From positions 76,694,001 through 76,758,000 of the forward strand of contig NC_043004.1 in NCBI RefSeq assembly GCF_006345805.1: DNA of 64,000 bases, written 5' to 3'. The first letter of the stretch is position 1; the number at the start of each line of letters is the position of its first letter. A model generated the notes under the pieces. It was not told the DNA's origin. It saw nothing but the letters and a program-made list of their open reading frames with translations, and did not search any database. The position numbers were made by a program, and so were the translations under genes. Shown piece by piece: positions 7,817 through 9,214 of the stretch. Source of the DNA: Octopus sinensis. Taxonomy: Eukaryota.

Positions 7817-8651
7817 AGGGAAACCATCAAATACTATTGCGGAAGCAATTCTACCACTCACCACTCTCTCAGTCACTAACTACTCTTAACCCTCTCAGAC
7901 CTGGGCCCCTGTACCTAACTTTACTTTCCACCTGGTCCTCTGAGCAAAAAAATAAACAGTTGCATATACAGCTCAAGAGTAACGATGCAGGCAAACTAAC
8001 GAACAGAATTAGCTCTATCTTCTTTTTCTCTGTGTGTTGTTAATTACCACTTTACTGGGAATCTAGCAGAGATGATGTTTAGCCTATTCCTGTTATAGTA
8101 GGGTTATAGAGTGACAGGGTTAATAAAAATGATTTCTAACATAAGAACAAGACAACAAATTTTGGAGAAAAGTACAATTGATTATATGGAACCAGTACTT
8201 GACTGTTGCATCACTGATATTAATGCCAGCTTGCAATTTGACAGGAGTTGATTGTGCCATAACAGTGTGGAAGATATCAGTTGTATCATCAGTAGCTACA
8301 CAGAAATGTCTGCAAGATACTGCCTTCCTCTGTGGCATGACAGTGTTGCTGAGATGGTCCACAATGCTATATGCATGTAGGATTGCTCTGAAGGCCATAA
8401 CAAAAGCACGACAGGGACAGAAAGTAGCCACACTTTAAAAATAAAGAACACTACTCTGAAACACTCAGATAAAAACAGCAACCCAGTGTAAGCACAACAA
8501 GTCAGATATAATTGCATGGGATATGGAGGAAAAGTCATGCACCATTGTAGAGATCAGTAGCCCAGAGGATGTGAATGCCTATTTAGAAAATGGAGAAAAC
8601 GAGAACATCTATGGAGAACTGAGGAGAAAACTGCAGCTCTTATATCAAGGC

Positions 8652-8879
8652 AGCAAGCTGGCAGAATCATTAGCATGCTGGGCGAAATGCTTAGCGGTAT
8701 TTTGTTTGCCGTTATGTTCTGAGTTCAAATTCCATCATGGTCAACTTTGCCTTTCATCCTTTTGGGGTTGATTAAATAAGTACCAGTAACACACTGGAGT
8801 CGATGTAATCGACTTAGTCCCTTTGTCTGTCCTTGTTTGTCCCCTCTATGTTTAGCCCCTTATGGGCAATAAAGAAATA
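8652..8879 (+). mobile_element. tRNA-derived SINE family A, Tx1-like tail variant
   Basis: A-box TGGCAGAATC, B-box GAGTTCAAATTCC, tail ...tttagccccttatgggcaataaagaaata. Exact TSD cttatatcaaggc at 8639-8651 and 8880-8892 (the last 3 nt may belong to the SINE head). Confidence 0.9.
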
Positions 8880-9214
8880 CTTATATCAAGGCTATAAATC
8901 TTCATTTGTTCCTATTATTATAAGTTCACTGGGCTATATGCGAGAGAGGGAGAGAGAGGGGGGCGAGGTGAAAGAGAGAAATAGATAGAAATGTACATAT
9001 ACACTCACACATGTGTGAGTGCACACATGTACACAAACACAAGTACATTTAACCTTATAGGAAAGAAGTACTCAATACAAAAGTAAAGTGAAATCATTTA
9101 TTGTAGTGTTGAGACTACAAATGTCACTGTTCATATGAACAACGTTCATGAAACTAGCAACAGAGTAATCTCAGCACTGAGGTGTTCCTCTGTGTGTGTG
9201 TGAGTGTGTATACA

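Follow-up and report, generated by a model that had tools for sequence, protein, structure and literature searches.

A SINE subfamily of Octopus sinensis shares its 3' tail with L1-superfamily, Tx1-like LINEs and is probably dependent on them

A 64,000-nucleotide stretch of Octopus sinensis DNA (contig NC_043004.1, positions 76,694,001 to 76,758,000 of the forward strand; hereafter the window) holds at 8639-8892 one copy of a short interspersed element (SINE), which occupies 8652-8879 and is delimited from target-site duplication (TSD) to TSD. Its 3' tail resembles the 3' end of a long interspersed element (LINE) located at 29781-32441 of the same window. From the comparison of these and related sequences we consider it probable that the SINE subfamily with this ending, called here the A-tail SINEs, is a stringent-type dependent of L1-superfamily, Tx1-like LINEs, and that the second and common SINE tail of the window comes from a related LINE lineage. 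This is the best reading because LINE relatives in other octopods carry the tail, the SINE tails of Argonauta match the LINE of their own species, the hairpin of the tail shows covariation and no poly(A) is present. The parts of this copy, a second solo copy and a representative of the common-tail form are the following:

8639-8651: 5' TSD of A-tail SINE copy 1, 13 bp, CTTATATCAAGGC, with the same 13-mer at 8880-8892
8652-8879, plus strand: A-tail SINE copy 1, with a head carrying A/B-box-like motifs, a CORE-like body and a LINE-like tail (blastn and MAFFT)
8817-8879, plus strand: LINE-like 3' tail of copy 1, with the hairpin GCCC-cttat-GGGC at 8855-8867 and the end AATAAAGAAATA
8880-8892: 3' TSD of A-tail SINE copy 1
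12103-12336, plus strand: A-tail SINE copy 2, with its tail at 12275-12336 and the TSD GATTGAC at 12096-12102 and 12337-12343
7603-7816, minus strand: representative common-tail SINE copy, tail ...ccaaaaatttcGGGCcttgtGCCTagagtaggaaag, with a 19-bp TSD at 7817-7835 and 7584-7602

The SINE is a short, dispersed, non-coding element of ~210 bp, for which 27 blastn matches in the window represent at least 20 separate copies, the full-length ones being bordered by TSDs of 7-19 bp. Alignment of 20 window copies with MAFFT displays 3' ends of two kinds. The commonest ending reads "...cccctcccccaaaatttcAGGCcttgtGCCTagagtagaaaagat", with a variant "...tgctGGCcttgtGCCaaaatttgaaa..at", and ATT/TAT repeats often follow directly. 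The A-tail, "...tttgtctgtccttgtttgtcccctctrtgtttaGCCCcttgtGGGCaataaagaaata", is found on four units, namely the solo copies at 8652-8879(+) and 12103-12336(+) and the 5' units of two composite SINEs at 28218-28613(-) and 45157-45545(-). Given that the A-tail copies have diagnostic body positions in common (GGTTGAT instead of GGTCGAT, and cagttacRcact instead of cagttgcatact), they form a real subfamily.

The terminal 41 nucleotides of the window LINE (32401-32441) align without gaps to all four A-tails, with 30/41 identities for 8837-8877, 31/41 for 12294-12334, 32/41 for the composite tail at 28385-28425(-) and 31/41 for a fourth tail, at 45324-45364(-), which was absent from the first-pass annotation of this DNA. 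The three values given by that annotation were recomputed and are exact. The 4-bp stems that it had described just before the A-rich end were located as well, AGCC/GGCT at LINE 32418-32431 and GCCC/GGGC at SINE 8855-8867, and the end sequences agree with it that terminal poly(A) is absent from both SINE and LINE. When the LINE 41-mer was moved along the window on either strand, 127,920 positions in all, a mean of 10.8 identities with a standard deviation of 2.9 was obtained; only the four A-tails reached 26/41 or more, the next best score being 25. With at most 3 mismatches allowed, a degenerate 20-mer drawn from the tail matched 5 times in the window compared to 0.12 expected; the LINE end and the four A-tails account for all of these matches. 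In 86 kb of octopod DNA the motif has 17 matches, of which 3 are LINE 3' ends and 14 are SINE 3' ends (two of them internal in composites). Furthermore, gapped local alignment of the A-tail with LINE 3' untranslated regions (UTRs) places the best alignments at the 3' termini, where they span 50-60 nt with z-scores of 7-10 for the window LINE, 5-9 for the LINE of contig L004 from the Joint Genome Institute (JGI) and 5.5-8 for Argonauta LINE2, each with 0/300 shuffles. The module shared by the two elements consists of a pyrimidine-rich TCTGTGT box, a hairpin with a 4-bp stem and the loop CTTGT or CTGTGT, and an AATAAAGAAAT(A) end. Scanned for the exact tail pattern, the viral and metagenome contig collections yielded no match.

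Two other explanations of the match were rejected. An isolated piece of SINE lying at the end of the LINE does not agree with a LINE tail that is only 73-78% like the SINE tails, with the absence of the SINE body at that place, nor with relatives in other species that have the tail at the same place. A relaxed, poly(A)-dependent partner of the Alu-like kind was rejected because SINE and LINE both lack poly(A) at their ends and have a specific tail in common.

The window LINE and its surroundings comprise:

29781-32441, plus strand: 5'-truncated L1-superfamily (Tx1-like) LINE, with reverse transcriptase (RT), a C-terminal CX2C..H..C zinc-finger region and two frameshifts
32381-32441, plus strand: LINE 3' terminal module, with the TCTGTGT box, the hairpin AGCC-ctgtgt-GGCT (32418-32431) and the AATAAAGAAA end
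29388-29780: (TATC)n array on the 5' side of the LINE (Tandem Repeats Finder)
32444-32814: (TATC)n array on the 3' side of the LINE (Tandem Repeats Finder)

Its translation contains Pfam RVT_1 followed by the CX2C...H...C motif CPRCGQSDETILHALVQC, the stop codon is located at 32032-32034 and the 3' UTR at 32035-32441; this 5'-truncated copy has no endonuclease domain. The nearest database relatives, which are 65-73% identical in protein, come from one NCBI assembly, Argonauta hians, and two JGI contigs and display RVT_1 and zf-RVT. Full-length relatives of ~1150 aa combine Exo_endo_phos (PF03372), RVT_1 (PF00078) and zf-RVT (PF13966), and for a full-length relative the best solved-structure match is human LINE-1 ORF2p (residues 6-854, E = 9e-69), compared to 5e-16 for the best R2. 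Given the apurinic/apyrimidinic endonuclease, RT and zf-RVT domains of the relatives and human L1 ORF2p as best match, the window element is an L1-superfamily LINE. Its membership in Tx1 is plausible, and the L1-type class of cephalopod repeat surveys is L1-Tx1 (PMC13282606, PMC8967140). Protein-guided scans of metagenome and genome contig collections returned 32%-identical relatives or nothing.

Homology of the A-tail to the 3' terminus of a LINE family, and not merely to one copy, is supported by the LINE ends found outside the window. At the Argonauta hians locus L001 one LINE copy has a 3' UTR ending in "...ttctgtgtcAGCCaggtGGCTaagaaagaaattt" and an adjoining short, 5'-truncated copy ends in "...ttctgtgtcGGCCcttgtGGCTaataaagaaatctat", while the LINE of JGI contig L004 ends in "...ccGGGCCcttgtGGCCaataaaagaaatc" followed by (ATT)n. 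These Argonauta and JGI relatives share an end module made of the TCTGTGT box, the 4-bp hairpin with the loop CTTGT and then AATAAAGAAAT. When the last ~150 nt of four LINE copies are aligned, the columns without variation are concentrated in the terminal ~35 nt, whereas the remainder has diverged. Moreover, in the 22-kb Argonauta locus the motif is observed 12 times compared to 0 expected, at 2 LINE ends and 10 SINE ends. The ten SINE-like ends belong to at least three families, all of them have a LINE-like tail and none, over these 22 kb, has the common tail. One of the families has a CORE-like body homologous to that of the window SINE, and at least two others have different tRNA-like heads. 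The Argonauta SINE tails are 71-88% identical to the Argonauta LINE tail compared to 53-68% for the octopus LINE tail, and the octopus A-tails are 74-79% identical to the octopus LINE tail. Several SINE families on one LINE tail, together with joint change lineage by lineage, are what a functional partnership would be expected to produce. Within L001 (1475-15309) a short SINE with a tRNA-like head is found at 1952-2100, and two copies lie in direct tandem at 14800-15310.

A hairpin in the shared tail is likely, if not proven. With 27 tails aligned (alignment A2), pairing within the 4-bp stem holds in 85.6% of cells compared to 65.8 +/- 3.2% in shuffled alignments (0/500) and 19-46% in slid controls. 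Double changes are observed in 3/4 stem pairs, giving the forms AGCC/GGCT, GCCC/GGGC, GGCC/GGCC and AGGC/GCCT, so that the check on stem covariation proposed by the first-pass annotation does find compensatory changes, from few independent events. RNAfold lengthens the stem by the flanking pairs UCU-AGA and UGU-AUA, contributed by the TCTGTGT box and the AATAAAGAA end.

According to the mechanism that we favour, the last ~50-60 nt of the A-tail SINEs would derive from the 3' terminus of the LINE family. The LINE ORF2 protein would recognise the 3' module on its own RNA, target-primed reverse transcription would begin at an A/T-rich nick, and SINE RNA with the same module would be used in trans; the SINE would most likely have passed from one LINE lineage to a related one by exchanging its tail. 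The sequences show the homology, its confinement to 3' termini, its persistence among LINE copies and species, and the compensatory changes in the stem; that the LINE protein reads the module, that it really moves the SINE and which way the tails were exchanged are the steps that we infer here.

The common tail consists of a C-rich tract, the GGCCTTGTGCC hairpin and an A-rich end, often followed by ATT repeats. MAFFT aligns it with the A-tail, hairpin register and loop being kept, and its best match is not the window lineage but the 3' end of a sister L1-type LINE lineage that is 45% identical in protein. The 3' ends of this sister lineage, as placed by comparison of copies L009 and L011, show a C-rich tract and tttttGGCCtYgtGCCaaatttgtat...acaataaata, and the same ending is found in L012 (50% identical to P0007) and in L014, a LINE of the cuttlefish Acanthosepion pharaonis that is 62% identical to the sister lineage. 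Furthermore, the exact 17-mer GGCCTTGTGCCAAATTT is common to the SINE copy at 18455 and the L009 LINE 3' region (z 6-8), and, among the loci retrieved, the 11-mer GGCCTTGTGCC is confined to LINE 3' ends (L009/L010 and the cuttlefish L014). In the window this 11-mer occurs 15 times compared to 0.38 expected, and its matches at aligned copies fall in common tails. By extrapolation, the common tail would thus be a diverged form of the same tail type, from a related L1-type LINE. When the window was searched for a further LINE as a source of the common tail, the single L1-type fragment was all that it contained, the remaining long open reading frames being without a Pfam match. No octopod SINEs were found in ~190 kb of DNA from one host of the ENA assemblies that carry the sister lineages (ERZ21867824, ERZ25071366).

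The first-pass annotation had proposed that the SINE family swapped tails and is moved by two different LINE machineries. Taken as two unrelated machineries, with the A-tail from Tx1 and the common tail from another clade such as RTE or Dong-R4, this appears unlikely to us, although the common tail often ends in ATT/TAT repeats. Repeat ends of the ATT/TAT type occur in RTE-type and other stringent LINEs. The L1-type relative L004 itself ends in (ATT)n, however, and the recent activity reported in octopus for RTE and Dong-R4 (PMC9115989, PMC13282606) has to be set against two tails that MAFFT aligns with the hairpin in the same register, and against a common tail whose best match is the 3' terminus of L1-type relatives of the window LINE. 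Since the tails align and the best match is a sister lineage of the same L1-type group, two related lineages of one LINE group are suggested, and the origin of the common tail in a related lineage fits better than two unrelated machineries. The swap itself does not stand as it was worded: all of the Argonauta SINE ends (10/10 in 22 kb) are LINE-like, hence the A-type tail may be the older state and the order may be the reverse.

TSD lengths had also been taken to separate the two tail types. A trend of 17-19 bp compared to 7-14 bp would favour two machineries. The solo A-tail copies have TSDs of 13 and 7(-10) bp, and two Argonauta SINEs with a LINE-like tail have clear TSDs of 14 and 12 bp. 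Common-tail copies show 19, 18, 17 and 18 bp, but also 12-13 bp (copy at 9828) and ~12 bp (copy at 42564). The contrast holds only for the copies on which it was based, and the difference in TSD length by tail type is not significant (Mann-Whitney p = 0.11), so the argument from TSD length is best given up. Moreover, TSD starts tend to be similarly A/T-rich for both tail types (ATTAT, ATAT, AGTATT, AATATT), as would be expected from related endonucleases, and several common-tail copies are located in ATT repeats.

The two composite SINEs provide a second alternative:

28218-28613, minus strand: composite SINE 1, with an internal A-tail at 28383-28445 and a 17-bp TSD at 28614-28630 and 28201-28217
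45157-45545, minus strand: composite SINE 2, with an internal A-tail at 45322-45380 and the 18-bp TSD ATTATCCAATrTGATTCT at 45546-45563 and 45139-45156

Each is a full A-type unit fused to a second unit from position ~58, with the common tail at the end. The junction is identical in both (aaagaaataG joined directly to gtatttcatctg) and separate TSDs of 17 and 18 bp surround the whole unit. The composites are a dimeric subfamily. Given their own TSDs around the whole, they spread as one unit by way of the common tail, and the A-tail was carried along inside as a passenger; their origin agrees with a template switch to an A-type SINE RNA at its 3' end. The A-tail could then be a relic, once LINE-derived, on copies (at least the composites) that were moved by a LINE reading the common tail. 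Two of the four A-tails, those internal to composites that have their own TSDs and end in the common tail, are what such a history predicts. Nevertheless, the two solo copies end exactly at the A-tail with the TSD directly after, and in Argonauta each SINE whose TSD is readable terminates with the LINE-like tail, so we rank a relic below two unrelated machineries and regard it as improbable.

A reversed direction, in which the LINE lineage gained its 3' end from a SINE through recombination or template switching, is very unlikely. Sequence similarity alone gives no direction, and template switching or fusion did happen in this SINE family, as the composites show. Against it, LINE lineages that are 45-62% identical in protein, that of the cuttlefish included, all have the hairpin and the AATAAA-type 3' end. 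The few SINEs reported in decapodiform cephalopods (PMC8967140) and the several unrelated SINE heads that stand on one tail in Argonauta both fit a LINE origin of the tail. Finally, a chance or low-complexity likeness of two A/T- and pyrimidine-rich ends can be dismissed for practical purposes, since, short and compositionally biased as the tails are and with AATAAA in both, the best chance score among the positions scanned was 25/41 compared to the observed 30-32, and the excess of the motif, in the window as in Argonauta, has every match at an element 3' end.

Several points weigh against the dependence of the A-tail SINEs on Tx1-like LINEs as proposed here. The sample is small, with four A-tails and one LINE in the window and 4 LINE ends of the lineage outside, and one relative, L008, lacks the A-rich end, its contig ending 29 nt later. 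RNAfold energies of the tails are no better than those of shuffles (z -1.2 to +1.0), so that support for the hairpin is limited to covariation, and the stem has only 4 bp, with covariation drawn from a handful of tail classes, that is, few independent events. The composites show that an A-tail can be a passenger, hence carrying it is no proof of using it, and mobilisation by the LINE is deduced from sequence. The partner of the common tail is an extrapolation because it is drawn from cuttlefish and ENA assemblies rather than from an octopus. The Tx1 label comes from survey classes and from target-specific insertion of relatives, not from an RT phylogeny. Lastly, the window LINE lies inside (TATC)n and the A-tail SINEs do not, nor do they show a strict target. 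A close relative is therefore a likelier partner than the window copy or its own subfamily; alternatively, the microsatellite position of the window LINE is incidental. Of the earlier proposal that the partner is this LINE family or a close relative, the family-level tail match is retained and the exact copy or subfamily becomes the less likely candidate.

Targets of the Tx1 type give a mixed picture among these LINEs, as the window copy lies between (TATC)n arrays, that of L004 before (ATT)n and the Argonauta copies outside microsatellites. A third lineage, P0177, which is 44% identical to the window LINE, has many near-identical copies, some in head-to-tail arrays. The flanks of 5 of its copies are alike over ~100 bp on each side, which indicates insertion into one repeated target, a Tx1-like trait. 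Head-to-tail tandem arrays are also formed by the related full-length LINEs L009/L010, L012/L013, L016, L019 and L021-L023 (ERZ21867824, ERZ25071366), with a period of 6596 bp in L009/L010. At L017 14181-14324 a 144-bp tRNA-like SINE is placed exactly between a LINE end and the usual target of that LINE. Its tail is like that of its LINE (GGCCTTGTGCC...aagttaattccag compared to AGGCCTCGTGCC...aagttaactccag), and a second copy at L020 2486-2625(-) has a 13-14-bp TSD. From these sequences the 144-bp SINE and its LINE look like a second tail-sharing pair in the same LINE group, a hint that in cephalopods this group is generally accompanied by SINEs with its tail.

The octopus SINEs OK, OR1 and OR2 are said to go back to Ohshima and Okada in 1994. 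These SINEs, and the 'tRNA-Core' octopus SINEs of repeat surveys (PMC8967140), are octopod, very abundant and CORE-like in body, and the window SINE, whose body looks CORE-like too, probably belongs to the same family, judged by the descriptions. OR1 or OR2 has been called a CORE-SINE (PMC4824008, PMC4758252), RepeatMasker surveys list octopus SINEs mostly as tRNA-Core without a named LINE partner (PMC13282606, PMC8967140), and octopus is missing from the 58-pair SINE/LINE table reproduced in PMC3747384.

Tail sharing between SINEs and LINEs and stringent recognition are long established (PMC3747384). UnaSINE1/UnaL2 of eel and other stringent pairs (Ohshima et al. 1996; Kajikawa & Okada 2002, as cited in PMC3747384) resemble the octopod pair in sharing the last tens of nucleotides, in having a stem-loop in the tail and no poly(A), and in the divergence of the rest of the LINE 3' UTR. 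The LINEs of such pairs belong to the L2, CR1 or RTE clades, whereas the octopod LINE belongs to the L1 superfamily; UnaL2, moreover, ends in TGTAA repeats, and its pair was shown by experiment to be dependent, while dependence is deduced for the octopod pair. Closer in LINE type are ZmSINE2/3 with LINE1-1_ZM of maize and sorghum and SINEX-3_CR with L1-1_CR of Chlamydomonas, which involve L1-clade LINEs and ~50-80 nt of shared 3' end (PMC3472496). The tails of maize and sorghum, like the octopod ones, have a hairpin backed by compensatory changes, but these plant and algal pairs keep poly(A) (PMC3472496), whereas the octopod pair is an animal one with no poly(A) and an AATAAAGAAAT-type end. 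The crocodilian SINEU/Tx1-Mar case (Kojima 2015, PMC4494074) is alike in that a SINE is attributed to a Tx1-clade LINE, and Tx1 relatives insert into microsatellites or other repeats (PMC4494074), as do relatives of the octopod LINE. However, the SINEU link is a shared target preference with no LINE of matching tail, while the octopod link is a shared tail; SINEU heads derive from small nuclear RNA (PMC4494074), and the A-tail SINEs show no strict target. Compared to Alu/B1 and mammalian L1, a relaxed system, the octopod pair is similar in its L1-superfamily driver and its A/T-rich target sites but differs in that mammalian L1 recognises poly(A) only, whereas here a specific tail is shared and poly(A) is absent. 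The octopod pair is hence a fresh animal case of a principle known since the 1990s and may already stand in Repbase or Dfam.

In octopus genomes no retroelement class is larger than that of the SINEs, which have debated links to genome rearrangement and neural expression. Surveys class them as 'unclassified' or 'tRNA-Core', and a named partner would tell which LINE activity timed the SINE bursts. The assignment yields an RNA element that can be tested, the hairpin with the A-rich end, and places a LINE from an animal among the small number of L1-group LINEs that seem to read a particular 3' structure rather than poly(A), which bears on the question whether the L1 group was stringent from its origin (Ohshima 2012, PMC3472496). 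More tentatively, as a possibility in which we have less confidence than in the partnership, cephalopod L1-Tx1-type LINEs may be stringent as a group, reading a 3' hairpin and an AAUAAA-type end, and two related lineages, rather than RTE/Dong, may have driven the octopus CORE-SINE expansion (reported as 4-11% of the genome). If true, the replacement of SINE subfamilies would track the exchange of tails among LINE lineages, and for the first time an animal SINE/LINE system of the L1 group would be defined by a structured tail common to both partners.

As to the SINE itself, its head, taken to be of the Pol III type, carries box-A/box-B-like motifs (GCTGGCAGAA... and GAGTTCAAATTC), identified by eye only; ARAGORN found no tRNA in the head, and on the copy at 12103-12336 no Rfam tRNA match was obtained even at E<=10. 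That the body (…TTTCATCCTTTCGGGGTCGATAAAATAAGTACC…) is CORE-like we take as a lead only. A sub-threshold Rfam match to HOTAIRM1_4 on the SINE body at 12220-12317(-), with 19 bits and E = 1.2, probably reflects CORE/MIR-like sequence in that Rfam family and is meaningless in itself. The copy at 37564-37790(-) has an additional partial head 5' of its full head, and that at 5302-5408 a 54-bp tandem duplication inside its tail.

The (TATC)n arrays on both sides of the window LINE carry similar TGTC and GATC variants, and the position of the LINE between them could reflect insertion into a microsatellite, as in some Tx1 families, or a coincidence. One long duplication as the source of the two arrays was set aside, their 94.6% likeness being uninformative because a microsatellite gives such likeness anyway. 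At the 5' end of the LINE a 69-nt inverted repeat (29781-29849 / 29865-29933) is 99% complementary with 15 nt between its arms, and looks like a 5' inversion or foldback as from twin priming in L1 insertions. The LINE 3' UTR at 32035-32400 holds an internal run of 21 A at 32072-32092, several extended tracts of T and of C, and two occurrences of the motif acgatccc(t)tttgatc. All of these are missing from the 3' UTRs of the relatives and may be due to slippage or internal rearrangement.

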